A DNA stretch of 64,000 nucleotides from NCBI GenBank assembly GCA_965644495.1, contig CBFFSA010000003.1, positions 372,001 to 436,000 of the forward strand. Direction: 5' to 3'. This document shows positions 12,188 to 32,812 of the stretch, piece by piece. The notes below the pieces were generated by a model. That model was not told the origin of the DNA. It ran no database searches and saw only the letters and a list, made by a program, of their open reading frames with translations. Source of the DNA: Perkinsela sp. CCAP 1560/9. Lineage: Eukaryota > Protista > Euglenozoa: Kinetoplastea. How positions within the stretch are numbered: the stretch's first letter is position 1; each line of letters begins with the position of its first letter. A program made the translations under genes and the position numbers.

Positions 12188-12520
12188 TAACCCGTTTGGC
12201 CATGACTGGCTATGGGTTCAGAGTACACCCTAGTTATTTAGTGCTCGTGCGAAACGGCACCGGGTATTACCGTACTCCGTGGGTGGTACGCTGTAAGTCG
12301 CGCGCAGACTTTCCCAGAGGGATGCCGCACTCGCAGATAGACGAGCAATACCTGTCAGGTTGCGTGGCCTGACTCGTCATCCGTGACTTCAATGCCCGAT
12401 GGATTCGCATCCTAGGGCAAAGAAGTAGTGGATCAGTCGTTATATTCTGTTCCACCACCAGGGATGACTCACGCTAGGGTGTGTGGAGCTTGCGAGGCTC
12501 TCTCACCAGCGGAGCTCGAC

Positions 12521-12551
12521 CACATATAGATACAGTTTCTGTACCTTGTTG
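12521..12551 (+). other. Spliced-leader exon copy at the 5' end of element A
   Basis: CACATATAGATACAGTTTCTGTACCTTGTTG aligns without gaps to the last 31 nt of the canonical trypanosomatid SL (CTATTATTGATACAGTTTCTGTACTATATTG, recalled), 24/31 identical, with an exact 16-nt core. Confidence 0.85.
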
Positions 12552-13362
12552 TTTTTTTCTCTTATCTTTATCGTTACCATGACGCGACCCCCTTCACATT
12601 GCACTCATGCTGATGCGCCGCAGGACCTTACAGGAGGACCACGCGGCGTTGATATGTCAACCGTTGATCTCTTAGACCATGGACGTCCCGTCGACGAGAA
12701 TGGAGCCCCCTCCGAACGACCATCATGCGTCACGCCAACCGAACTAGTGACTGCAAATATGGTACCGCAAACCCCCATGACCCACGGAACACCACGTAAA
12801 CACAGGTGTCTCAACAAACGAACATGTCTTCACCCGTGTTGTAAGAGGCAACAGCCTCGCATAAACAAAATCGATATTCCTACAGCACCGAACTTGACGA
12901 ATATAAGCACCCCACCGAGATTCTTCGGGAGAGTATATTGCATCATCGAAGCATTACTGGCGACAATATTCATGAAAATACCCTACTTCGTAACCCAACC
13001 TGCATATTGCCGAAACTCTACAGAACCACCTCAAACGAAGCCATGTAAACATAAATGTCTAAACAAAAACACATGCAAGCATGCCTGCTGCAAACGCCAC
13101 TTAGTACACACTACTCCAGATCAAACGAGCAACCCCTACACGGAGCAGACCCTCAAGGTTGCAATACTATTTCATAACGTGAAGTACCTCATGGAACTAT
13201 TCTGCACACTTGTCCACTTAATATTCGCACTCACATGGTATGCGCTCAGTCTTTTGCGAAGTGTGATTATCATGCAGTAAACTGCAGAGATTAAAACAGA
13301 AGAAGATCGGGTGTATCCCTTTAGTGCGCCCAAAACGCACTTCTTCTTCTGACATGCCCACC

Positions 13363-16300
13363 TCATTGGAAGCTTGGCATATACCAGTTGGGGTTCTCCC
13401 GTTGTTGGTATATGTGGAAACTTCCTAGTAGTGCTCGCTGCACTAGTTTTTCCCTACACTTGGAGGCTTCAGCCTTAGTTCCAAAGAGGGAGTTTATCGC
13501 ACGTGCGGAGGAGTTCAGCTTTCCTCTCGCACCAACTTCAAAAACCAGGAGAAAGGTCGACGGATTCGCTAGCCTGCGCTGCGTGTAAAGATGTGTGTAC
13601 TTACGAACCTTCCGTTCGTGGGCGTATTCCAAGTTCTCTTCCCATGGGGATGTAAGTTCAATTATGTACTCGGACCCGTTGTGCAGCCGCACCCATCCAT
13701 CTGGTCTCAGTTCAGTTCCGTGCGAGAGCCAGGGAGGAGAGTTGCGGTACAGGTCCACGTCAAAGTGGTACGAGGATGTGGTGGGAGAGTTGGCAACAGC
13801 GTCTGCAAGGGCGAGTAGTATAAGATCATGGCGGTATGTATACCGTCCTTGCTCAAGGGACACTTTGCAGCCTGTTAAGATGTGGCGCGGGGTCTGGGTC
13901 GCTTCGCCACAAATTGGACATGCGACGTTCGTGTGTGACGATATGCCCCACCGGCGGAGAGAGGAACGCGTAGGAAGTGGAGTTTGAGTGAGCACGGATG
14001 CCGCGAAGCGAGAGAGGGAGGAGCTTTTGACATTACATAGGGCAGAAGCGAAGTCTTTCGCTAGGTCGCTTTCTGTAGCCATTTGAAACCATTCGCAGGC
14101 TATGGTGGTGCGGCGTTGTACTGACTCGATCAAGTGCCTTTCATACTCATCGTTAATTGTTCTTCGGAGGTTATCGGGGTCATCCCGCATATCATAGAAC
14201 CTCGCTGCGGGCCTCACATGTCCTGATGAGCGTCTACGTTGCTCGTTGGCTATCCTGTGTCGTAATGCGTACTGTACCGCTGGGTCACGAGATTTGGACA
14301 TTTGCGAGATGGCTGTGGCCGTACACTGCAGCCAAAGCTTAGAGATGCTCATCATCCGCCAGCCGCGCTCAGAGTAGAAGAGTTCACTTGTGGCCGTTTT
14401 CGCAACGTTAAGCCATTTCCTGATTTGGTTTGTGGCCAACTTTTGGAGACGGAGGATATAGTTGAAAGTGATCCCTGTGTTCACAGTCAGGACGTACCGG
14501 AGACGGGAAATTATTGCGTTATTGTAGATCCACATTTTCGCTGCTTGATCAAATGCGCTTTCCGTAATGTTTCCGAGCCACTTCCGCAACTTACATTGCA
14601 GGGTTTTGAATAGAACTTTTCCTTGTTGTGCCCCAGGAGCTAGCGTCATTCCGAGAAAGAGACTTCCCTTGTTACAGATATGTGGAATTACCTGCCCATC
14701 CGCGACTATGCGAGGGCGATGTGTCTTGTAACCTCCGTTGAGGACTGCCATGTGTTGCACTCGGCACTTCCCGACGTTCAGCCGGAGCCCCATAGTGGTG
14801 AGAACCCGGTGCAGAACGTTGGTCGCCCGCTGTAATTCGTCAGGGGTGCTCGTGACAAGGGTTAGGTCATCAGCAAACGCTTTTATGAAGGTTTCTCGCG
14901 TGTCCCATACAATACCATATTTTGGCAGGCTAGATCGGAGGTACCGAAGGACCACTTCCATTGCGATGAGAAAGAGAACAGGAGATAAGGTATCGCCTTG
15001 GAGAACGCCACGTGTTATAGAGATATCTCCGGTCAATCCCTCTGCACACTTCACTTGCATGGAAGCTCCCGTGTACAGGGCTCGAATGTACGTGATAACG
15101 TTGGTGGGAAGGCGAGCCCATTCCAGGGCAGAGAAGAGCACATAGTGTGGGAGTGAACCAAAGGCATTTTTGAGGTCGTACTGTCCAAGGCAGTATTGGC
15201 GTTTGTGTTGCCGTTGGTGGTCAAGAAGTTCACAAAGCGCTTGGGTATGTTCGATACAGCCATTCACACCAGGCAGGAATCCCTTCTGGATTGTAGTATC
15301 TATTACTCCCGATCCTGTGACATGTTCCTGAATCCGGTGGCTGACAATGCTGTGGAAGAGTTTCCCGAGACAGCTCGTAAGGCTTATGGGCCGCCAGTTG
15401 GAAACGTTCTGCGTAGGGCCACTTTTATGCACAAGAAGGGTAACCGCTTTCTTCCAGTTGTCGGGACAGACCCCAAATTTGAAGAGGTCGTTAAACGATT
15501 GGGCTAAGAAAGGGTGTAGCGCGGGGCAGCGCTTTAGCAGCGCATTGCTAACGGTGTCAGAGCCTGGTGCCGCTGTATGGCGCTTCGATGACACAGCGGC
15601 TGCGATCGTGGCGCTATCTATTGCTTCCCATGTCATGTCTCTATCCGCCTGGGGGCCCAGAAGCTCTTTTGGAGGAAGTCCACATTCTTGAGTTGTTTCC
15701 ATAGAGCCCCTGAAATAGGACTCTACTTCGGCGGGGGCGATGTCTGGATGCTTCCCATTACGTTGCTGTGCTTCTTTTTCGTGGTTATCAATACATTCAC
15801 TACCTGCCGTCCAGGGATTCCTTTGAAATCTTGTGTGGGCCCAGCGCTGAGCCATCTCCAGTCGCTGCGCTTCTCCTTCTGCCATGTAGACCTTCTGAAG
15901 TTTCACAGCCTCTTTCAGTTGACCCTTGACGTGGTTCCGCTCGGCCCGTCCGTGGGTATATCGCAGTGTTGCTTTCAGTTGTCGAACGTGAGTTTCAAGC
16001 TGCTTGGCCGAGCGCTCCGCTGCCAGGGGGCGTGTTCTGCGACGGTTGTGACGCGCGTTTGTTCTAATACGGAATCCCCCGGTTGGGTCTGCCTCGCTGG
16101 CCACCTCGTATGCCGACACGGCGAGACATGCCGTGAGTAGTTCTGCTTGTGCGGTAGCCTCGTCGGCACTCTCTGCGGGACTCAGAAATTTGGTACATCT
16201 TTCCAGTGCCTTTTCCTCCGTGCGCTGCCACTGTGCAGAGGAAAGATGTATCATGATGCGGCCTCCTTCTATGGTGCGTAGTGTCGATAGAAGAGTTCCG

Positions 16301-18099
16301 GGTGTATCCTGCACGTTCTCCAATCGGGACGTTGCGGCCCTCGATCGGTTCGCATTAGCCATCAGAGAGCGGGAAGATCGAAGCAGTGGCGGTTCAGGCT
16401 GGTTCTCAGGGTTCCTTATCAATTGGGGTGAGTTGGGAGTTGGTTGATCGTTCTCATCCCCCGACGAGATCGAGTTTCTCTGACCGGTGGATCGCGTCTG
16501 GCTGCTTGAGGTCGTCGATGTGGTTGTCGGCGTGGTGGTTGGTGTCTCTTCCGTGGATTGGTTGAGGCGAGAGTTTTGACTTCTGGAAATACTGATGTTT
16601 TGCACGGATCCGTCGGGGTTGATCTGTCTCTCTGCTGGGGGTCGTGACCCTAGGAATAGACTTCGAAGACTCCAGCATGACGATTCAGCGGATGAGGGCC
16701 GCGCGGAAACTAGTACTCCTTCTTTGCAGCACTTGTGTAGGCATCGGGCTTTGTCCTGGCATTTATGCAGACACGGTCGTCTATTGACTTGTACCTCATT
16801 GCTAAGGGCAGGTGTGGAGTTGTTAGGAATCGGCAGTGGATCGGGAAGTGCTGTGACATGAGGGTTAGTGTCTTCTAGTGGGGCATTTGCTGCATGGGCC
16901 TCGGTTGTCACGTTGTCAGAGAGCTGCGCTCGCTCATTTTGTGAGGTCCACGGTATGAGACTCCTCAGGGACCAACGGGCTGCAGAGGGGCGCGTTTCCG
17001 AGGCTCTATCGCTGTCGTAGTCGTGCGCACGCCTGGTTTCACGGCTCTGGTACGCACGGGGTTCATGTAGTGCTGATTGGACGGTTCGGGTGCTCCGCTC
17101 GTCAAGGGAGGGTGTGAGAGGAGTTGCCGTTGCCCGTTCTGGGTGAGGACGAGGGGAGATGGGGACTCCCACCTTGCAGCATCGATGTTTGCAATTCGCT
17201 TTATCTCGGCATATGTGCTTGCAGGGCCGATGCGTCACCGAGGTGGGAGGGCTGCTTGGCGTGGAGGGAAGTGGTGCTGGAGTGAGATTTTCTGCATGCG
17301 GCTCGCTAGGGGAGTCAGTTGTGGTTGGTACCTGCATAGCTGCGCTTACGGGTTCAGGTAAATGAGGATTTCCGCTTTCCGGGTCGGTGATTTTGCAGCA
17401 GGGATGTTTGCATCTCATTTTATTGAAGCAACGGTGTGCGCAAGGTTCGGTGCGTGCTGATGTAGGGGCCGGTTCTGCGGGGGTGTTCCGTGTGGGGAGG
17501 ATTCGGTAGGGTTCGTCAAATTGGATTTTCGGCTTGGTCCACCCGATATCTGCGTCTTGTTGTGGCTCAGGGGAGACATGTGATATTGCGAAGCGGGCCA
17601 GTGAGGGTATTACACGTCCGTTGAGTCGTTTTTGTATGGCCCGTCCTAGGGATCCCGCTGAGGAATAATCCTGGTCGAGCTTCATGTCTTTGTCATTATA
17701 CGCTGAGGCCCAGCTTGTGTGTCGGTAGATCGAATATGGCGCCGAAGTTTCGCGGAAGAGGAAGAAATCGCATGCTTTGTGGTCCATAACGTCGTTCAAA
17801 GTGCATCTTTGGACCACGATTCCGTCGGAGCGCTTCGCTCCTGATGAGAGAGTTCGTGCGAGGGAAAGCTCCGCTGTGATTTCCGCTTGGAAATGGTCCT
17901 TCTCAGTTAGGAATAAGGCTGCCGCGTGCGTGTCGGGGAAGTAAAGCCAGTGTGGAGACTCCGAGTTTCTGAGACGTAGGGATACTGCCCGATTCTGGGT
18001 GAGGCGGAAGCTTTTCTCTCGAGGTGGGGGCGCGCTGGCAGATCCTCGAGGGAGGTCGCCTGGCGCTAGGGGGGGCGGGGTAGGAGGGTGAAGTGTCAT
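13363..18099 (-). CDS. Retrotransposon protein: N-terminal domain, three Cys/His zinc fingers, RT, CCHC, RLE
   Basis: APGSD, NWRPISL, DTTIQKGFLPGVNGCIEH, DLKNAFGS, GVLQGDTLSP, AFADD, CPICG..HILTGC, YTYRHD, LRPDG..IELTSPWEE..HERKVRKY..EVGARG. Confidence 0.92.
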   Translation of the reverse strand: MTLHPPTPPPLAPGDLPRGSASAPPPREKSFRLTQNRAVSLRLRNSESPHWLYFPDTHAAALFLTEKDHFQAEITAELSLARTLSSGAKRSDGIVVQRCTLNDVMDHKACDFFLFRETSAPYSIYRHTSWASAYNDKDMKLDQDYSSAGSLGRAIQKRLNGRVIPSLARFAISHVSPEPQQDADIGWTKPKIQFDEPYRILPTRNTPAEPAPTSARTEPCAHRCFNKMRCKHPCCKITDPESGNPHLPEPVSAAMQVPTTTDSPSEPHAENLTPAPLPSTPSSPPTSVTHRPCKHICRDKANCKHRCCKVGVPISPRPHPERATATPLTPSLDERSTRTVQSALHEPRAYQSRETRRAHDYDSDRASETRPSAARWSLRSLIPWTSQNERAQLSDNVTTEAHAANAPLEDTNPHVTALPDPLPIPNNSTPALSNEVQVNRRPCLHKCQDKARCLHKCCKEGVLVSARPSSAESSCWSLRSLFLGSRPPAERQINPDGSVQNISISRSQNSRLNQSTEETPTTTPTTTSTTSSSQTRSTGQRNSISSGDENDQPTPNSPQLIRNPENQPEPPLLRSSRSLMANANRSRAATSRLENVQDTPGTLLSTLRTIEGGRIMIHLSSAQWQRTEEKALERCTKFLSPAESADEATAQAELLTACLAVSAYEVASEADPTGGFRIRTNARHNRRRTRPLAAERSAKQLETHVRQLKATLRYTHGRAERNHVKGQLKEAVKLQKVYMAEGEAQRLEMAQRWAHTRFQRNPWTAGSECIDNHEKEAQQRNGKHPDIAPAEVESYFRGSMETTQECGLPPKELLGPQADRDMTWEAIDSATIAAAVSSKRHTAAPGSDTVSNALLKRCPALHPFLAQSFNDLFKFGVCPDNWKKAVTLLVHKSGPTQNVSNWRPISLTSCLGKLFHSIVSHRIQEHVTGSGVIDTTIQKGFLPGVNGCIEHTQALCELLDHQRQHKRQYCLGQYDLKNAFGSLPHYVLFSALEWARLPTNVITYIRALYTGASMQVKCAEGLTGDISITRGVLQGDTLSPVLFLIAMEVVLRYLRSSLPKYGIVWDTRETFIKAFADDLTLVTSTPDELQRATNVLHRVLTTMGLRLNVGKCRVQHMAVLNGGYKTHRPRIVADGQVIPHICNKGSLFLGMTLAPGAQQGKVLFKTLQCKLRKWLGNITESAFDQAAKMWIYNNAIISRLRYVLTVNTGITFNYILRLQKLATNQIRKWLNVAKTATSELFYSERGWRMMSISKLWLQCTATAISQMSKSRDPAVQYALRHRIANEQRRRSSGHVRPAARFYDMRDDPDNLRRTINDEYERHLIESVQRRTTIACEWFQMATESDLAKDFASALCNVKSSSLSRFAASVLTQTPLPTRSSLRRWGISSHTNVACPICGEATQTPRHILTGCKVSLEQGRYTYRHDLILLALADAVANSPTTSSYHFDVDLYRNSPPWLSHGTELRPDGWVRLHNGSEYIIELTSPWEENLEYAHERKVRKYTHLYTQRRLANPSTFLLVFEVGARGKLNSSARAINSLFGTKAEASKCREKLVQRALLGSFHIYQQRENPNWYMPSFQ

Positions 18100-18145
18100 G
18101 CCCCAATGGGGGAAAGTAACAGTTAGTACGAAATTGAAAATAATT

Positions 18146-18174
18146 CAACAAGGTACAGAAACTGTATCTTTATC
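18146..18174 (-). other. Spliced-leader exon copy at the 5' end of element B
   Basis: Minus strand reads GATAAAGATACAGTTTCTGTACCTTGTTG; the last 24 nt are identical to 12528-12551; 46 nt upstream of the ATG. Confidence 0.85.
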
Positions 18175-21100
18175 ATAGCATACCTCTAGTTCCAGTGGCA
18201 ATCAACCAGATCTATCTAACCCTCTCCAACTTCAAAACGCCTGTCTCACGGAAATACGATGAACTTTGGTTGCTACTTGGGAAGACCAAGAAGACATCAA
18301 CATCGACCATCATTTTGGAACTTGTAAAATTACCACTACGCATCTTTCTCTGGTACATAGACTTCCTTACCCCCAAAGCTCCAAGCGCGCATAATGTACA
18401 AGCAGAGAATGATGAACCCAATTGTACGAATCCAACTATTGCACCTTGAAAATCGCGCTCCCAAGCAACCAAACTGCGACAGCAAAAACGACGCCGCGAT
18501 AGCTACCTCATGCAGTGCCACTAAAAACGACGAGATCCCTGGATACGAAAACCAAAATACAGAATCTCTGTATCCCGAGGTGCTCGCTCGCCTCCCTTCC
18601 CCACTACCGGTACCTAGCGACTCCGTAGACCATCACATCCTACCGGAAGAAAGCACGGACGAAGTTCCCACCTGGGTGTTCAACAACCAACACTCGGGAA
18701 ACCTAGATGACGCCGCCACAACACCTACTGGACTGAGTGCATCGCTTCAACACAAACAAAATCTTCATTTTGTCCAAAGCCGGGCGCGCCCCTTAAAAAT
18801 AAGAACACTCACAGATCTCACCTGGCGGTATTTTCCAGACGTCCGGGCCGCCAGCGAATCCCCTCTAGTCAAGGCCAGAATTGCTTCTCATCAAGCAGCG
18901 CAAGCGGCACTCAGTAAAATGCTTTCAGAGAACGGAAGCTCCCACGACCTAATTGTTCAGCCAGCCTCACTGGACGAACTCATGGATCACCAGGGATGTG
19001 ACTACATAAGGGTTGTAAAACAAGCGCACGCACAAGAACACCGACGGCACGCCAGCTGGGCTTCCCTCTACAAAGATGATACCTTCAAACTTGGTGAGTC
19101 ATACAGCTCCGCGGGAGCACTCGGCCGCGCAATCCTTAAGGTTCTTGCCGGAAGGGATGTGCCCCTCCTTCAACATCTGCATATTACACTACATAAGCGG
19201 GAGGAAGATCCCTCAGACGTACACTATGAAAAGAACCCGCGCCGAGAAGCATCCCCTCACCGCATCCAAACTATCAGTAGGGCACCTACGAAGCTTAGTT
19301 TGCACCCGTGTCAGCACACATGTCGAAACAAACCGGAATGTGCCCACAAGTGCTGCAAAGTATACGGACCAGTGTATGCCCGGAGGAACACTACGCAAAG
19401 AGACACCGAAGACTCAGAGACCGATGCAGCAGCCATCCAGCACCCGAACAGCCCTCCTCCGGCTGCAGAGTACCCTACCTCCCCCGAGCAAGAAGCCTAC
19501 TCTCGAACCAGATTGCAAACGCAACTTCTCCAGAAGCACGAAGCCATAAGCGGAGGTAAGGTTACGATACGACTAAATGAGGTACAGTGGCGGATTGTCG
19601 AATCGAGAGCGAAAGAGAGATGCATTCAACTACTTACCCATACACCGGATAAAGAGGCAGCTGTACGAAACGCGGAATTACTCAGTGCCGCATTAGCGGT
19701 CTCAGCACATGAAGTCGCCATAGAAGCAAATCCGACGAAAGGTTTCCTGATAAGGACCAGTACCGGACATGCACGACGTAGATACCGACCACTCGCGGCG
19801 GAAAGAACCGTAACCGATCTCAAACACCATTTAGAAACGATGAAACGATCGCTACGTTACACGAGGAACCGGGCGGAACGCGAGAGAACGCGGGCACAAA
19901 TTAAGGAATGTCGCAAAGAGATCAAGCTGAGGGAGGAGGAAGCTACAATGCAACGCAGAGATCTAGATGAAAGATGGGCCGCACAGAGATTCTCTAGAAA
20001 CTCGTGGACCGCGGCATCCGAAACGATTGATAAACCTAACGGAAGAGAGGTAGAAAACACCGCACTTCCCACCTGTGACAGATCTAGCATTGAATCATAC
20101 TTTCAAGAAAGTTTTACCCCCAATGAGCAATCCTCGCGTCTCCCTCCTTCAGATCTACTAGGTCCGACAGCTAGCCAGCCAATGCAATGGAACCCGATCT
20201 CCCATGAGGATGTCACTGCAGCTGTCACAATGAAGCGCAACGCCAGTACTCCAGGAACCGACACGATAACTAACAAAATACTCAAAAACTGCCCATCGAC
20301 ACACGAATACTTTGCATCTGTGTTCAACGATCTAATGACTTTCTCTGTGTTCCCGCTATCATGGAAAACCGCAGTAACCAGGCTGATATATAAAGCAGGT
20401 AGCAAAGAAAATCCGAAAAACTGGCGCCCGATCTCCCTTACTAGTGCTCTAGGTAAAACCTTTCACACGATCATCGCACATCGACTGACTCAACACCTGA
20501 CTGAACACCATGTCATTGACCCTCAAATACAAAAAGGCTTTCTCCCTTCCATTAAGGGTACACTGGAACACACCCAAACTCTTTGCTCACTCCTGCGACA
20601 TTACCAGAAACATAAAACTCAATATTGCCTCGCACAACTCGACCTGAGCAATGCCTTCGGGTCTGTCCCACATCATATCATACATGCCGCTCTGAAATGG
20701 GCCCAAGTACCGCCGGAGGTCATCCACTACATCAAAAATACCCTAACGGATGCGCACATGCGCATTAAGTGCTACGAAGGTCTTACGCAACCTATCTTTA
20801 TACGAAAAGGTGTCCTCCAAGGGGATACCCTCTCTCCTATTGTCTTCCTGATAGTGATGTAAATTGTTTTGCGATATGTCCGATTCTCCTGCCCGCACTT
20901 CGGTATGAAACTCCCAAACGGTCTGAACAACTTCCTTAAGGCTTTTGCTGATGACTTAACTATTCTTACTGAAAGCGACGGAGACATGCAACACGCACTT
21001 GATGCAGTTACCAAAGTGCTGGGCGAGCTAGGCCTTAAGATTAACGTGAAGAGTCGAATACAGTGCATGAGCACCCGTAAAGGCGAGGAACATCCAGGCT

Positions 21101-22675
21101 ATATGACAAGACGTCCGGAAATAAAAGTCTACGGAGAGACCAGACGACACATATGTGATGTCGGTAGCACCTTCCTCGGGATGACCTTGGCACCGGGGTC
21201 CCAACAACTGAAAGAGCTGTTTCGTAAACTCGACTCAAAACTAAAACAGTGGATGGAGAACATCACACAAAGTGCCCACAGCCTTCCCGCTAAGCTTTGG
21301 ATGTACAAAAATGCCGTTCTCTCACGTCTCCGTTTTCAGTTCGTTATTCACCCCTGTCTATCGTTCGGATCCGTGCTACGCCTTCAGAAGCGAGCCACGT
21401 CTCACATACGGAAATGGATAAACATGGCGCGTGCCGGAAGCTCTGAAGTCCTGTACTCTTGCCGAGGCTGGAATCTTACGAGCCTGTCAAAACTTTGGTA
21501 CGAATGCACGGGAGAATCTATGACGCAAATGAACAAACCCAAAGATCCAAATGTCCTACATACACTTCGCATACGCATACAGGAAGAGCAACACAAACGT
21601 CAAAGAGGTCAAATACGACCCGCTACTTTAATTACAGAACATCTGGATGATCCCCGAATGACTCGTCAACGGCTTCGTGAAGCACATGAGGAGGAAATGA
21701 TCACGCGCTTGCAGCAACGCGCGCCCATCGCAGCCCTATGGTGGCAGTTTCCTACGGATCCAGAAATGGCCCAAGAATTCGCTTCTGCCATAAATGGGAT
21801 CCGGAATGCGAAGATCTCCCGCTTTGTAGCATCCGTCATGACTCTTACACCGCTCCCTTCCCGAGCAGCGCTTGTTCAATGGAGCCGCAGCACCTACAGT
21901 AACATGAAATGCCCTATTTGCAACGACCGAGTGCAAACCGTCAGACACACCCTTTCCGCCTGCACCACTTCACTTCAGCAAGGACGATATACTTTCCGTC
22001 ATAACCTTGTCCTTGCCGAATTTGCGAAACATATTAGGGAAGCACAGGGAACTGAGTTTGCATATTTCGACCTACCAGGAGAGCGTAACCCACCAGCTTG
22101 GCTGAGGGAACACGATACACTGCTCCGTCCCGACGGTTACATTAAACTTCACAATGGGACAGAGTTCCTCATCGAACTCACAGTCCCATGGGAGGAGAAT
22201 GCGGAGAACGCTCATCGGAGAAAATCCGAGAAGTACAACATCCTTTTACATACACGGCGACAGGAAAACCCGGACACCTACATAATAGCCTTTGAAATAG
22301 GTGCCCGGGGATTCCCCAATGGGTCATGCAAATATATTAATGCCATCTTTAACGGCGACCATATTTTGGCCACAAAGTGTCGAGAAAGCATGACACAGAT
22401 GGCCCTCAGGGGGAGTTACATACTCTGGGCTCGCCGAAATGAGGCGACATGGTCGGAGGAGGAAACGTATTGACATTGTCTTCTAAAAAGGGGGCAATCC
22501 CGTTGAATGCGGGTCATACCCCCGACTTACTCTACTGGAAAGTATGAAAAAAATAAATCATGGAGCTCGACTTCACATTTTAATAGTATTGAGAATTCGT
22601 ATATTTGTGTTTACTAATTAAACCCATGTTTCTTATTTCTACTATGATATACTGGAGCACCGAATCCGGATTGGA

Positions 22676-23089
22676 ATGCAATTATCTACCGTGCTAACCC
22701 CCGAATTACAAGGAGTATGGGAATTCTTACATCAGTGGATCGTGCTAACGCAAAGCAAAGGAAGTGCAAGTTTTGATGACAAGGAACATTTAAAGTTAGG
22801 ACAAATGCTCTTAGATCGATTAAGAATCAAGCAGGCAGTGATGAAGGGAGCCGACCCACAATATGTGGAGACGCACTATGGGAATCAGCGTGATCCAACA
22901 GATCAGCTCGGAACGATGTTGGCTACCAGTATCCAATACAACCGATCTCGGGGACGATCGTACACAACTAACACCCGGGGAATGCGCCGACCCTACGCGA
23001 CCCGACGGTATTATGACCAACCACGATCGTACGAAACCAAGCCATCACGCCCGGATTTTTATTCGCGGGGGTCTGGCGGAACAAAGTGA
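22676..23089 (+). CDS. Gag-like ORF1
   Basis: Helical ORF with an Arg/Gly/Tyr-rich tail immediately before the YR ORF. Confidence 0.55.
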   Translation: MQLSTVLTPELQGVWEFLHQWIVLTQSKGSASFDDKEHLKLGQMLLDRLRIKQAVMKGADPQYVETHYGNQRDPTDQLGTMLATSIQYNRSRGRSYTTNTRGMRRPYATRRYYDQPRSYETKPSRPDFYSRGSGGTK

Positions 23090-23134
23090 CTCAGAGAAGT
23101 CCGCCCCCGGGCAAAAAGCCAGTTAAAAGCAAGT

Positions 23135-24174
23135 TTGGAGTTCGGCAGTTTAAGGCAAGTAGTAAGGAAGAAAGAGTCGCAGAAGATAAGTCAGTTACGG
23201 CGCGCCAGAAAGATTCAGAGCGTGCTAAAAAGCAAGTTCAGCGTACCGGGTACCACGAACGGGGGACAAGAACCGCGGGAGGAAGAGAAACCCCGCCAAG
23301 ATACGATACCTGGGCGAATCGATACGCCCCACTCCGCCCCGACTACGGCAGGCGTATATATCCGCGAAGTGCGATACGTCCTGATGGAAATGGGAATAAA
23401 CAATTCCAAAACACAGAGGCAGCTGCTAAACATGTGGGCACGGACGACATGGTTGACACGGGGCCGTTTATTAAGGCAAATGCGAGCAGCAAACCTGACG
23501 CTAGAGGACGGCAGTGTGGTAGCATTTGTCGCGAGCCTCAACGTGCGCAAGCAGACGAAGCACACATACATCAAGCACCTGATCTCAATCCTGACCCAGG
23601 CCAAGAAGCCGGCAACACACTCGCAAATGTACGCGAAGACACTGGTGCGGGAAGGAGCAGCGATACCAGAACGGCAGGCGAAACCGATAACAAAGGACCA
23701 AATAGACAGATTACTCCCGAGCATGACAGCGGACATGGCAATAGTGGTATTAGTCGCGTACAAGACGGCATCTCGTGCAGGCGAGGTATCGAAAATGAAG
23801 AGAAGCGATGTTATAACACTACAGCCAAACCGTGTAGTAATACATTGGGGACAACGAACGAAATCAACGAAAACGCAACCATTTCGCCCCGATTCTTTCG
23901 TGGTGATCGAGGGGGATTATACCGAACGAATATATCGAATATTAAGACAACGAAATTTTTACGGACACACCTGGGCAACGGTTGCACTTCTCACAGCCTC
24001 AAACATGGGGCAGTCCACGGTTTAATGGAACAGGTATCACGAGGAAATCTTACACTCGAAGAGGTAGTGAGAGTGACCCAACACAAGCAATTGGGAACAC
24101 TACTGAGATACTCGGGAACGAACGAGACGACAGCTTTAGCTTTGGGTACCCAAAGGAGTACGCGCACACTGTAA
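23135..24174 (+). pseudogene. Tyrosine recombinase, frameshifted near 23950
   Basis: KTASRAGEV and QRTKSTK in the 23135 frame; SHSLKHGA..TQHKQ..LLRY in the 23086 frame. Confidence 0.8.
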
Positions 24175-24176
24175 AA

Positions 24177-25997
24177 ATGAACGAGAACACTTATGGAAAA
24201 CAAGGTACGGAACCAATACGGGAATTGCGCGTACAAAAAGGAGGCGACGAGCGGCTGATCGCATGGTGGGATCGGAGCGCAAAGGATAGCGCGTGGAATC
24301 CGCGTCGTGTGTGGTCACGACTGCATAGGAAAACCGAGCGACCTACTCCAGAGATGATGGAAGCAGTACCAATACATGCGCAGCGAGTGGAGCCCTTAGA
24401 CCTGGAACGGGCTAAGTGGTTGATGCTACCACATATAAGAGAGCGATTCGATTATCTGTGGAACGAAATTACACGACCGTCCGTCTCGCCATACTTGAAA
24501 AATAATTCGCCCGTCAGCAAAGATGACTTAAGCCACGCCGACGTCAAGTCTCTACTCGGAGCGGACATCATCGAAAGAGTGGATAACGAAAGCACAGAAC
24601 CCACAAGAGCATGGGTATTTCCTTTTACCAATCTGGAACAACGAGAGGGAAAGTTCAGAAGGCGATTTATAGCGTGGCCGAAGGAGCATAATAATGCAAT
24701 CGAAGAATCATATGACGCGGTGGTACCGTTACAACAACCGGTAACGTACACGGCCAAGGTACAGGAAGAAACGGCAACATTGCGTGACCTCGCCTCGGCA
24801 TTTTATCAGGTGGAATTGCCAGGAACAACAAGATCATACTATCGGTTTCGACATAACGGAGCGATATATCAGATGAAACGCATGCCGATGGGGCACGCTA
24901 TGGCCCCAGAAGTTATGCAAACGCTAACGGGGATTATAGCGGGGCACACGGCTTATACGACGGCTCCCAGTGAATGACAAAGGTGGGGCTCTCCTGACAT
25001 ATATGTCGATGGGTTACGAATGTGTTCGTCATGGGCGGCGTGTACGGATTATGGAGCTTGGGTCGACGCCCGAGCAAAATACATTGGGGCAATCTTCAAG
25101 GAGAATGATACAACGGCAGTCATTGACTATGAATGGCTCGGTGTGCAGTACAATCATGCAAAGAATAGTTATAGAATGTCAACACGGTTCATTGATAAAA
25201 TCCCAGGAACTTTGCCGTTACAGTCTTATTTCTGTTATTACGAAACGCTATGCGCACGACTGGTATACGCGTCCGGAATCTTGTCTATAAACATGCCCAA
25301 ATATTATTGGACCATCAAGTACACTCGCAGACAAGTGTCAAAAATGAATAAGGGTCTTATCGGGGAGATGAATATGACGCAACCTCCCGAAGGCGCCCTG
25401 AGGCAGTTGCATACATGGGCACACGAAGTACGAAGTAACGAATGGCAACAATATCACGAGCCATCTTTCCAGGCCGCGACTATGTACACCGATGCATCCT
25501 TAGACGGCTGGGGGGCAGTACTATTTCTTCCCGATGGCACCGTGTACGGAACAGGGGCGGCCTGGGCGAAGAAGACGAAGATAAATGAGGGCGAGGCCCT
25601 GGCGATAGAAAGGGCGTTGTACGCGTTTCAAAAACATTGGGACCAAATGCTTAAAATCTATATACATATTGACAACACAAGTGTGCACTACGCGTTGCGG
25701 AAACAATGGGCCGAATCAGAAGCAATAGCCCGCGTGCTGGCGAGGCTACTGGAAGTAGCAGCGACACAACGCATGACACTCATTCCAAGATACGTAACGA
25801 CTAAAGAAAACTGCGCTGATCCGTGGAGTAGGAATCGGTTTGATACCTGGCGAAAGGGGGGAATATACGAACTGATTCAAAGTCGGACTGGCGAAAGGGC
25901 GGGTGCGGACGGCCCGCTCGTTAGTAACAATGCAAGTTTAACGGATAGAGAAAATGAGCATGCATACACGAATAAAGGACAGTATTTGAAATTATAA
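24177..25997 (+). pseudogene. DIRS-type RT + RNase H with an in-frame TGA at 24975
   Basis: RRRFIAWP, DLASAFYQVELP, RMPMG..APEVMQ, YVDGLR, YTDASLDGWG, INEGEA, IDNTS, NCADPWSR; both ORF pieces share one frame. Confidence 0.85.
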
Positions 25998-26000
25998 TAA

Positions 26001-26200
26001 NNNNNNNNNNNNNNNNNNNNNNNNNNNNNNNNNNNNNNNNNNNNNNNNNNNNNNNNNNNNNNNNNNNNNNNNNNNNNNNNNNNNNNNNNNNNNNNNNNNN
26101 NNNNNNNNNNNNNNNNNNNNNNNNNNNNNNNNNNNNNNNNNNNNNNNNNNNNNNNNNNNNNNNNNNNNNNNNNNNNNNNNNNNNNNNNNNNNNNNNNNNN
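26001..26200. other. Assembly gap (200 N)
   Basis: N-run. Confidence 1.
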
Positions 26201-26242
26201 GGAGGGGATGGAGGGGGAGGGGAAGTAGATGGGGGGGAGCAT

Positions 26243-27172
26243 GTGGAATCTTGGGGAGAAGGGAGGGGAGGGGGAGAAGAGGAAAGGGGGGGAGGGGGAG
26301 AGGAAGGACGGAGGGGAGGGGGGGAGGAGAAAAGGAAGTTAGATCCCCCCGAACGATGCTCTGAACAAGGTCGTGGAGGAGGACTCTCACAAGGTAACCC
26401 AGGAACACAACAAGCTCCTCGAGTGTTTGCACACCCACGGGCTCGGGTCTCCAAGGTGCCGGGGACCACACGGGATACGTTAGAGGTACGTTGCGTGTAC
26501 AAAGGGACGCGGATGAAGCTGATTGACACTGCGGGGTTTGTGCGCATACGAGAGCTGCGCGATCGGCCGTTTCGGGAGGCACTGTGGAAACGGACCCGAT
26601 CGGCGCTGCGGTTTGCCAGTGTCGTGGTGGTGGTGTTTGATGCCAGCAAGGGGTGCCCCAGCAAGGCGGATCTCATTCTTGGGTACCGATGCGTGGATGA
26701 GGGGCGGGCGGTGGTGTATGCGGCCAATAAGTGGGATACGGTAGAGGATGGGATCGCGACCGCGGAGGCGATTGATTATAAGCTACGCAGACAGCTGTAT
26801 GAGGTGAAGTATTGTAATGCCGTGGCGGTGTCTGGGGTGACGGGGTTGAATTTGGATCTGTTGTTGGATAGTGTGATTCGGGCGTATGAGACGTGGAATC
26901 GACACATTCCGGCGTCCGTGTTGACGCGATTTTGGCAGCGCTTGGAGAAAACGGTGAGCATGCCGCATCACGTGACGCGGGTGCGTAGGCTACAGCAAAT
27001 CAATATACGACCCCCGACGTTTTTGTTACACCTACAAACACGGAATGATAGGAAAAAATTGCCCCCAAGATACGAAAATATGATACGGAATGCTTTGGTG
27101 GAAGAGTTTGGTTTTCGAGGCGTACCGTTGCGCGTCTTTCAGTGTGTGAAAGATGCGTTTAAAGATATCTAA
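26243..27172 (+). CDS. EngA/Der-like GTPase (second G domain plus KH-like C-terminus); 5' end lost in the gap
   Basis: PGTTRD, LIDTAG, ANKWD, RPPTF..YENMIRNALVEEFGFRGVPL. Confidence 0.8.
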   Translation: MESWGEGRGGGEEERGGGGEEGRRGGGEEKRKLDPPERCSEQGRGGGLSQGNPGTQQAPRVFAHPRARVSKVPGTTRDTLEVRCVYKGTRMKLIDTAGFVRIRELRDRPFREALWKRTRSALRFASVVVVVFDASKGCPSKADLILGYRCVDEGRAVVYAANKWDTVEDGIATAEAIDYKLRRQLYEVKYCNAVAVSGVTGLNLDLLLDSVIRAYETWNRHIPASVLTRFWQRLEKTVSMPHHVTRVRRLQQINIRPPTFLLHLQTRNDRKKLPPRYENMIRNALVEEFGFRGVPLRVFQCVKDAFKDI

Positions 27173-27334
27173 CATGGTAATGACCAATGGGGGTATGTTG
27201 TGGTGTATGTTGTGTCACTTGTAATCATGGTTAGAATACAATCACTACTGTTGAACTACTTGTTTGCTGCATTTTATTTTCTTTATAGAAGCGTTCGGGT
27301 ATTCTTTCCATTTTTATAATCCTTTTATTTTGAA

Positions 27335-32165: not shown

Positions 32166-32691
32166 CCATGATTCATGATACTGTATCATGAATCCATGGC
32201 CCTGACCATACTGTATCATACAACACGGTCAGGGCCATGTATACGTGCTGGCAAATGAAGTCATGGTTCATCGTGCGTCATGGTGATCGGGGTCCCACAG
32301 AATCCGCCACGGCTGGTGAGCAAGGGAGGCACCATAGAGCATCCTCTCGAGCACGCATATACAGTGCGCCCCGATAGTAAAGTTTTTTTTAGTAGTTACC
32401 ACCGAGTTTGGGTAACTACTAAAAAAACGTTACCATTCGGGAAACCGTTTTTTGGGACTTTACCAACTGGGCGCACTGTAACGCGTTTGCTCGTCGTGCG
32501 GGGGACTTCCAGTATATGGAAGCCTCCTGCGCGCAGAAGTACCGGTGTCACGTTAGTGGGGAGGCAGGCCGCGTGGTCCCGTAGAAGGGTCCAGCAGCGC
32601 ATGGGGACTCGCAACCGTGTTCCGACCGGGTTATTGAGGAATGTAAAAAGGGAGCCGCACTTCTACTTTATGACAAGAGGGACAGTTCCCC

Positions 32692-32812
32692 GCCTAGCGT
32701 CATCCGGAAGCGGGCATGAACACAGTAAAAATATGCCCGCTTCCGGGAGAGAAATGATGAGCTAGGAAAATGTACCAATAAGGCACAGAAACTGCATCTT
32801 TATCCTTTAGTG
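32692..32812 (-). ncRNA. Spliced-leader RNA-like gene or pseudogene (37-nt exon at 32812-32776, GT donor, downstream hairpin)
   Basis: CACTAAAGGATAAAGATGCAGTTTCTGTGCCTTATTG|GTACA; TGTGCC/GGTACA stem across the donor; perfect 14-bp stem CCGGAAGCGGGCAT/ATGCCCGCTTCCGG downstream. Confidence 0.65.

Follow-up and report, generated by a model that had tools for sequence, protein, structure and literature searches.

Two nested elements headed by the host leader

The window analyzed here, a 64,000-nucleotide stretch of contig CBFFSA010000003.1 of the kinetoplastid Perkinsela sp. CCAP 1560/9, contains two nested retrotransposons, designated A and B, each of which begins with the 3' part of the host spliced leader (SL). 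Element A (12525 to 22559, forward strand, with a start that is ambiguous by 1 nucleotide, 12524/12525) is an R2-like long interspersed nuclear element (LINE) with approximately 5.1 kb of its own sequence. It is split by element B (13262 to 18176, reverse strand), an intact R2-like LINE of 4,915 bp that lies inside A in the opposite orientation. The 24-mer AGATACAGTTTCTGTACCTTGTTG occurs exactly at 12528 to 12551 on the forward strand and at 18146 to 18169 on the reverse strand, and no match is expected by chance (100 shuffles). A repeat search of positions 12300 to 23000 showed that A and B share only this stretch and one patch within the reverse transcriptase (RT) region. An earlier sequence-only reading of this DNA had singled out the 24-mer as the sole DNA common to the two 5' ends, and our searches agree with it. 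The sequence was right; the relics proved to be longer than 24 nucleotides (nt). The relic of A spans 12524 to 12551 and corresponds to SL nt 11/12 to 38, with one A-to-T mismatch at nt 14 (12527). The relic of B spans 18146 to 18174 and matches SL nt 10 to 38 exactly, preceded by two extra bases, AT (18176 to 18175). Both terminate precisely at the SL exon/intron boundary.

The host SL RNA gene is a tandem pair of 297-bp units with a common upstream flank, adjoining a 5S rRNA gene (Rfam, 99 bits) at C1:661.3 kb. The exon is 38 nt long (AACTTTAACGATAAAGATACAGTTTCTGTACCTTGTTG) and is followed by an intron that begins GTATGAG; its 3' end has the relic sequence, which bears out the identity that had been proposed for the 24-mer. 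A 20-nt leader core occurs 549 times in the 21-Mb genome versus 0 times for a reversed control, and the intron continuation (CCTTGTTG/GTATGAGAAGC, the slash marking the junction here and below) is present at only 8 of these 549 sites, 2 being the tandem genes and 6 being retrocopies. The assembly holds two SL RNA genes with the promoter flank, neither of them interrupted by an element; because there are only two, the gene array may be collapsed in the assembly.

Empty sites were available for both elements. A sister copy of A on contig C47 (L092), 98% identical to A, is uninterrupted where B sits in the window and reads GCGAAG-C-AGCATACC at that place. A joint from 13261 to 18177 with a C between was also seen in DNA contigs from three runs, in agreement with L092. 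It follows from this copy and these joints that B comprises 13262 to 18176 and that one target base was lost, with no target-site duplication (TSD); the target inside A is GGTATGCT/G/CTTCGC. The target of A is CACA/AT within a dispersed repeat of which there are at least 17 other copies in the genome. Three element-free paralogues of this repeat (L107 to L109) read GGAGCTCGAC-CACA/AT-GGAGCTCGAC-CAGTGCCC-TTCACATTTT, that is, ...GGAGCTCGACCACA/ATGGAGCTCGAC..., with both copies of GGAGCTCGAC standing 6 bp apart and no element between them. The GGAGCTCGAC pair of the window (12511 to 12520 and 22562 to 22571), which had been read as the TSD of A, is therefore native to the host repeat, and A comprises 12525 to 22559 without a TSD. 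A TTATCAT duplication had been assigned to B in the same way and must also be withdrawn, since one side is the 3' tail of B itself (...CTGCATGATAATCACA) and the other is AT plus SL nt 10 to 14, as the empty site in L092 confirms. R2-type integration is compatible with the absence of TSDs.

SL sequence is absent from both empty sites. Each relic was thus inserted together with its element, directly at the insertion boundary as had been claimed, and the targets were not SL genes or their repeats. Site-specific insertion, the habit of R2, CRE, NeSL, and R4 elements, was not observed either, as the flanks of other A and B copies are unrelated. The 8-bp CAGTGCCC, which lies 12 bp downstream of the insertion point of A in the three element-free paralogues, is missing from the window at 22572, just 3' of the second GGAGCTCGAC; this may represent either variation among paralogues or an alteration of the target at insertion. 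The 3' end of B (13262 to 13291, reverse strand) consists of a small stem-loop followed by ATGA and an A-rich tail (...ATCTCTGCAGTTTACTGCATGATAATCACA).

The leader junction in related copies

The 5' untranslated region (UTR) of A has only two genomic copies, and both are SL headed. The relic of the sister copy L092 runs from SL nt 7 to 38 and is without the mismatch at nt 14. A diverged A subfamily of two copies (L093 and L095) starts at nt 16 and nt 13, respectively, the latter with an extra TACCTTGTTG. The A-family copies therefore start at leader nt 7, 11/12, 13, and 16, and all of their flanks are unrelated. The B-type UTR has nine genomic copies, every one of them SL headed, with starts at nt 10, 11, 11, 11, 11, 11, 13, 14, and 15. 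A second copy of B, on contig C20, matched 299 of the 300 positions of a 300-nt 5' query at 100% identity. Further B subfamilies that are 70 to 79% identical retain the junction SL/AATTA...GTACTAAC. No conserved element sequence was found upstream of the leader in any A-family or B-superfamily copy, the flanks diverging at SL nt 7 to 16. The relic remains identical to the host leader while the adjacent UTR diverges, neighboring UTRs being about 70% identical between families.

The UTRs themselves are as the sequence-only reading described them: 27 nt in A (12552 to 12578, forward strand) and 46 nt in B (18100 to 18145, reverse strand), each without an AG and each followed by ATG. Both contain sequence complementary to the leader. 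Positions 12563 to 12576 of the A UTR (TATCTTTATCGTTA) are the exact reverse complement of SL nt 6 to 19, a match with an estimated chance of about 3e-6, and the diverged subfamily (L093/L095) keeps this complement in the form CTTTATCGTT. The full SL joined to the A UTR gave a predicted fold of -19.3 kcal/mol (z score of -4.2 versus shuffled UTRs), and the predicted fold of the sister copy L092 has a 13-bp stem (z score of -2.9, 0 of 200 shuffles). The window copy of A is truncated and mutated, and the stem is lost in its predicted fold. In B, UTR positions 18129 to 18113 (GTACTAACTGTTACTTT) are predicted to pair with SL nt 13 to 31 in a two-part hairpin (18174 to 18097; -20.9 kcal/mol, z score of -4.0, 0 of 200 shuffles). 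A hairpin of this type is predicted in four B subfamilies, whose UTR alignment has GTACTAAC as its conserved core. Because the UTRs complement the leader and the junction is inherited across subfamilies, the leader in the A and B lineages seems to have belonged to the functional RNA of the element for a long time and is no longer a passive scar.

An Rfam scan of 12300 to 23000 at an E value of ≤5 found no ribozyme or known RNA family, the only hit being a chance snoRNA-like match. The sequence-only reading had credited the elements with neither a promoter nor a ribozyme; the predicted 5' hairpin, which is strong and conserved, has the leader as one of its strands. Separately, a nucleotide motif (GGCGACCTCCCTCGAGGAYC, GGACCTTACAGGAGGACC, and GGCCTCCCTTGAGGACC) is conserved in A (12621 to 12649, forward strand), in B (18060 to 18031, reverse strand), and in the noncoding family described below, about 270 nt from the 5' end. 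It falls inside the open reading frame (ORF) in both LINEs and may be a cis-acting RNA signal.

Proteins and element class

The N-terminal part of the A ORF (12579 to 13261, forward strand) ends at the B insertion and is continuous across that point in L092. After B the frame resumes (18177 to 22473) with RT, CCHC, and restriction-like endonuclease (RLE) regions, and a stop at 20863 to 20868 divides it into pieces of 18177 to 20862 and 20869 to 22473. The B ORF (13363 to 18099, reverse strand) encodes 1578 amino acids with three Cys/His motifs, RT, zf-RVT, a CCHC knuckle, and RLE. Pfam matched RVT_1 in B (3e-28) and in both pieces of A (1e-18) and zf-RVT in B, and no match to an APE domain (Exo_endo_phos) was found in B. 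The A and B proteins are 46 to 50% identical. A phmmer comparison aligned B with the solved R2 proteins (9nl3, 9dou, and 8gh6) from the RT to the C terminus with an E value of 2e-29. Residues 1394 to 1503 of B contain a CCHC motif (CPICGEATQTPRHILTGC) and then RHD, RPD-x13-E, and KxxKY, and A has the same set; the putative restriction-like endonuclease was identified in both from these motifs. On this architecture of a single ORF with RT, CCHC, and RLE and without APE, we classify A and B as RLE-type (R2-superfamily) non-long-terminal-repeat (non-LTR) retrotransposons.

A protein search returned mostly unnamed metagenomic homologues; the named ones were arthropod R2-like proteins and uncharacterized fish RTs at 23 to 34% identity, and no CRE-named protein was among them. 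The sequence-only reading had called the elements HERO-like. The architecture points to an R2-type RT with an RLE, and the HERO label is not established by it. The N-terminal third of the B protein (residues 220 to 460) also contains three copies of C-x-H-x-C-x5-C-x-H-x-C-C-K, of which A has one; these have no Pfam match and presumably form a DNA- or RNA-binding module.

Leader relics across the genome

There are about 620 relics in the genome, heading several LINE and short interspersed nuclear element (SINE)-like families; besides the 549 core sites, a further 71 relics are not preceded by G22. Relic junctions were tabulated as a sample of 84 distinct junctions (contigs C1 to C3 plus targeted places). 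In that sample, two groups differ in where the leader begins. A large set of poly(A)-type families (L009, L033, L035, L085, and others), often found head to tail behind the A-tail of another copy, starts at leader nt 1 to 3 in 35 of 48 copies. Nearly all of these continue from the leader into AATTATTT and a pyrimidine tract, and their ORF starts with an LsmAD-like motif (GSWDQFxxN...STY.E.LYTTP) followed by RNase H and RT. The R2-like set consists of the B superfamily, A, and class ii; of the 32 copies sampled from class ii and the B superfamily, 23 start at nt 10 to 13.

Class ii is a noncoding, SINE-like family of about 560 bp (L002, L005, and L026) with about 327 candidate copies, and in 39 of the 40 best copies the leader starts at nt 11 to 15. 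The layout is SL nt ~11 to 38, then GTAC; a GUACC..GGUAC hairpin resembles stem-loop I of the SL RNA, and a separate 15-bp hairpin (CCCCGGCAACGGGCAT...) is also present. The 3' end (TCTCTGCGCC..AGCGCATGA plus ACATCAAAA/TAAAACA) has a stem-loop, ATGA, and an A-rich tail, as in B, and because of these common features we believe that B-like LINEs probably mobilize the SINE-like family. The window holds a relative of this family, a third, decayed SL-headed element, at 32166 to 32799 (reverse strand). Its relic (32776 to 32799) is a third copy of the 24-mer, with three mismatches, and it carries the 5' module of the SINE-like family (SL/GTACATTTTCC..CCCGGAAGCGGGCAT), aligning with L023 and class ii copies. 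The possibility that 32776 to 32799 is an SL RNA gene was ruled out, as it has neither the shared promoter flank nor the GTATGAG intron.

Unspliced SL RNA has also been copied into the genome. Six retrocopies containing exon and intron (L070 and L111 to L115, at C2:801.6 kb, C1:410.1 kb, C20:10.9 kb, C25:23.9 kb, C49:34.4 kb, and C86:12.0 kb) start at exon nt 3 to 5, have unrelated flanks, and end in ...GGGGCTT plus an A-run, one copy being cut short. Other marks lie at the leader's 5' end. Pieces of the leader's 5' half precede a complete relic in L014, L041, L049, and L065, and ATAAAGAT is stuttered in L101 and L027; both are typical marks left by RT at the end of a template. Of the 34 relics scored at position 2, where the gene has A, 20 have T, 4 have G or C, and 10 have A; 7 of these 10 are ambiguous because they lie within an A-run. 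We infer that the changes at this position reflect misreading by RT beside the modified cap.

Leaders stacked on leaders were found as well. At 11 sites genome-wide a leader is followed by SL nt 23 to 38, as expected from splicing at the ACAG of a relic, and at 2 sites it is followed by nt 17 to 38, as expected after AAAG. No stacked leaders are present in A or B themselves. In two SINE-like subfamilies, a minority junction, SL/TTCATC, falls exactly after the polypyrimidine tract and AG (CCCTTTAG/) of the common long form, and the copies with this junction again start at leader nt 11 to 12. Since they restart there, the loss of about 10 nt arises at copying or integration and is not inherited. 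The SL RNA retrocopies, the stacks after the relic's own AG, and the SINE-like junction after a polypyrimidine tract and AG together make a strong case that RNAs carrying the SL are copied back into DNA in this genome.

Origin and maintenance of the leader

A and B are R2-type LINE families with no fixed target, and their 5' end consists of the host 38-nt leader in DNA form; we consider it probable that this module derives from element RNA that was trans-spliced and then reverse transcribed. The element RNA would acquire the leader, presumably by trans-splicing rather than by some other joining, and the leader-bearing RNA would be reverse transcribed, an event that would have occurred many times, in R2-like LINEs, their SINE-like partners of ~560 bp, and poly(A)-type LINEs. 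Copies in the R2-like set regularly start at nt 10 to 13, with about 10 nt lost, and in the poly(A)-type set and the SL RNA retrocopies copying extends to nt 1 to 5, adjacent to the modified cap. Within the A and B lineages, the junction is inherited across diverged subfamilies, and the UTRs have evolved sequences predicted to pair with the leader in a 5' hairpin; an SL-headed source copy would by some means regenerate the same junction.

Several observations weigh against this account. In every A- and B-type copy, the dinucleotide before the leader/UTR junction is TG, the end of the relic, and never AG, and no leaderless source copy of A or B was found in the assembly. Junction variants within the B superfamily (L030, L101, and L104) also do not follow AG; they were discounted as alternative trans-splice sites for that reason and may be small deletions across the 5' hairpin. 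The commonest stack in the genome is an extra TACCTTGTTG (the last 10 nt of the leader) between leader and UTR, present in at least 18 families and at 30 sites; it comes after UG and so is not a canonical splice product. Examples include L116 to L135, L040, L079, and L095; L122 has three units, the arrays of L118 and L124 are degenerate, and several such copies begin at leader nt 23. The leader of the SINE-like family is followed by GTAC, which resembles the GTAT of the SL RNA exon-intron junction, so that unspliced SL RNA, and not a splice product, could be the source of this 5' module. Finally, the single run that is possibly RNA yielded nothing on A or B, its only contigs here being two short ones over the leader. 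Separately, an 884-nt contig from that run (X5), matching 18137 to 18172, starts at about the leader and then runs, as ...TTG/AATTATTTTCTTTTCTC..., into another element; should the run be RNA, this contig would represent a transcript bearing a leader at the same type of junction.

Given that no AG precedes the junction and no leaderless source is visible, canonical trans-splicing alone cannot regenerate the junction from the visible copies. The leader must be passed on or renewed by a mechanism other than canonical splicing at that junction, candidates being transcripts that start internally, or are processed, near nt 11 and a switch of RT to cellular SL RNA by way of the relic. A more specific proposal is that the host leader has been co-opted as a working 5' module with which the UTR pairs, the relic serving as a homology region that re-templates each cDNA on cellular SL RNA, in a transfer like that of a retroviral R region; in this way the leader would stay perfect and the junction would not shift, with no need for an acceptor. 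We advance it as a tentative possibility. That the junction arose by retrotransposition of leader-carrying RNA has good support, and none of the three conditions under which the sequence-only reading would have been refuted (a different host SL, element sequence upstream of the motif, or flanks made of SL-gene repeats) was found to hold. A strict version of that reading, with fresh splicing in each cycle, is not supported, given nine B-type and two A-UTR copies that are all SL headed with no AG.

In its strict form, that model denies the elements any 5' signals of their own and derives each copy from a read-through transcript freshly trans-spliced at a canonical AG just upstream of the UTR, with a few relic-less copies as sources. 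It would explain why relics are identical to the host SL beside UTRs that have diverged to about 70% identity, and both the SL/TTCATC junction and the ACAG stacks point to fresh leaders joining element transcripts, with the renewed start at nt 11 to 12 assigning the ~10-nt loss to copying. We nevertheless judge it unlikely. None of the 9 copies with the B-type UTR or the 2 with the A UTR has AG/UTR in place of the leader; the two copies of B share identical 5' ends, so that they have a recent source, which the assembly should contain; the junction kept across subfamilies of 70 to 79% identity would need a separate hidden source for each; and the complementarity of the UTRs to the leader implies long coexistence on one RNA. 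The fixed junction without AG, and the relics' identity to the host SL, would be explained if RT itself joined or renewed the leader, the cDNA switching at the relic or at the RNA 5' end onto an abundant SL-bearing RNA or a free SL exon, either guided by homology as in retroviral strong-stop transfer or by an end-to-end jump. R2-type RTs are known for template jumping, and such switching would also account for the partial leader pieces, the ATAAAGAT stutters, and the extra TACCTTGTTG after UG. It leaves the junctions exactly after AG unexplained, however, and requires that the 5' end of the element RNA be defined separately, and as a full explanation it seems to us similarly improbable.

Two further explanations were considered. 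Insertion targeted to SL genes or relics, as in SLACS, CZAR, and CRE, would make the leader a piece of target sequence, and the starts of R2-like relics near nt 11 to 12 do fall about where CRE-clade elements interrupt SL genes (PMC12278014). The empty sites without SL refute this for A and B, the leader's 3' part lies upstream of the element 5' end and not downstream of its 3' end, and none of the flanks contains an SL promoter or intron; the probability that we leave to it is negligible. Alternatively, the relic could be an element-borne mimic of the leader, arising by convergence or ancient capture and transcribed from an internal promoter, with no continuing link to host SL RNA. The inherited junction and the position of the leader within a conserved predicted hairpin fit a mimic, and an internal 5' promoter, Pr77, is known in trypanosomatid LINEs (PMC1874656). 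A mimic would not be expected to match the host exon exactly over 28 to 36 nt, up to the exon boundary itself, in many families with diverged adjacent sequence, nor should sister copies differ in leader length, as they do in A (nt 7 versus nt 12); moreover, copying of real SL RNAs is evident from the SL RNA retrocopies and the stacks. We regard a mimic as very improbable, and retain reverse transcription of trans-spliced element RNA as the preferred reading.

Comparison with known systems

The closest precedent for leader-headed copies is in dinoflagellates, whose retrogenes contain well-described relict leaders (DinoSL relics; PMC5585692, PMC6050394, and PMC12014239). As here, the host leader is encoded in DNA, ends at the exon boundary, and lies 5' of the retro-copied unit within the inserted segment; partial-leader stacks there arise by resplicing at an AG in the relic, and the 11 plus 2 sites in this genome may have a similar origin, whereas its most frequent stack (30 sites) follows UG. 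The dinoflagellate cases involve cellular genes copied in trans, whereas here whole autonomous LINE families and SINE-like partners are concerned, with UTRs that have evolved predicted leader pairing and, in the R2-like set, a fixed loss of ~10 nt. Our literature search found the leader habit for dinoflagellate genes only and no report of LINE or SINE families with a host leader as their regular 5' end, nor was the 38-nt leader sequence itself found in the papers searched. The Diplonema genome paper does not mention leader-headed elements (PMC10161547).

Among kinetoplastid elements, the CRE clade (SLACS, CZAR, and CRE1/2) is similar in its RT, its C-terminal restriction-like endonuclease, and its connection to the spliced leader. 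Its members insert into SL RNA genes at one fixed position, with SL gene sequence on both sides, so that the link between LINEs and leader described for kinetoplastids is the reverse of the one here; the survey that describes this lists four transposable element clades for trypanosomatids (PMC12278014). A and B differ in having non-SL targets and in carrying the leader's 3' part inside the inserted unit. The L1Tc/ingi elements with Pr77 (PMC1874656 and PMC8190864) also form kinetoplastid LINE/SINE sets with a common short 5' module thought to govern expression; Pr77, however, is an element-specific internal promoter giving unspliced transcripts, while the module here is the host leader. The likeness to R2 extends to the alignment from RT to endonuclease, the CCHC plus RHD/RPD..E/KxxKY motifs, insertion with no TSD or a 1-bp deletion, and structured RNA ends. 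R2 is specific for 28S ribosomal DNA, and a hepatitis delta virus (HDV)-like ribozyme frees its 5' end from the rRNA cotranscript. A and B, in contrast, have unrelated targets, no ribozyme found by Rfam, and the host leader as the 5' end.

Kinetoplastids transcribe their genes polycistronically and have no gene promoters. If LINE families ride on host trans-splicing, they would represent a new way for a retrotransposon to acquire RNA that is capped and can be translated in these organisms. The leader marks the true 5' end of each insertion, making about 600 integration events readable at single-nucleotide resolution, and two RT machineries leave distinct footprints on one leader (nt 1 to 3 versus nt 10 to 13). 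Together with the miscopying at position 2, these footprints could serve as a genomic record of how RT handles a hypermodified cap. The predicted pairing between element UTR and host leader would represent a parasite RNA evolving around a host RNA, a testable case of coevolution.

Neighboring features

Downstream of A, the region from 23000 to 27200 gave weak RVT_1 and RT_RNaseH matches that point to another LTR/DIRS-like retroelement. An EngA/Der-like GTPase ORF lies at 26243 to 27172, and the region as a whole is a pile of transposable elements.

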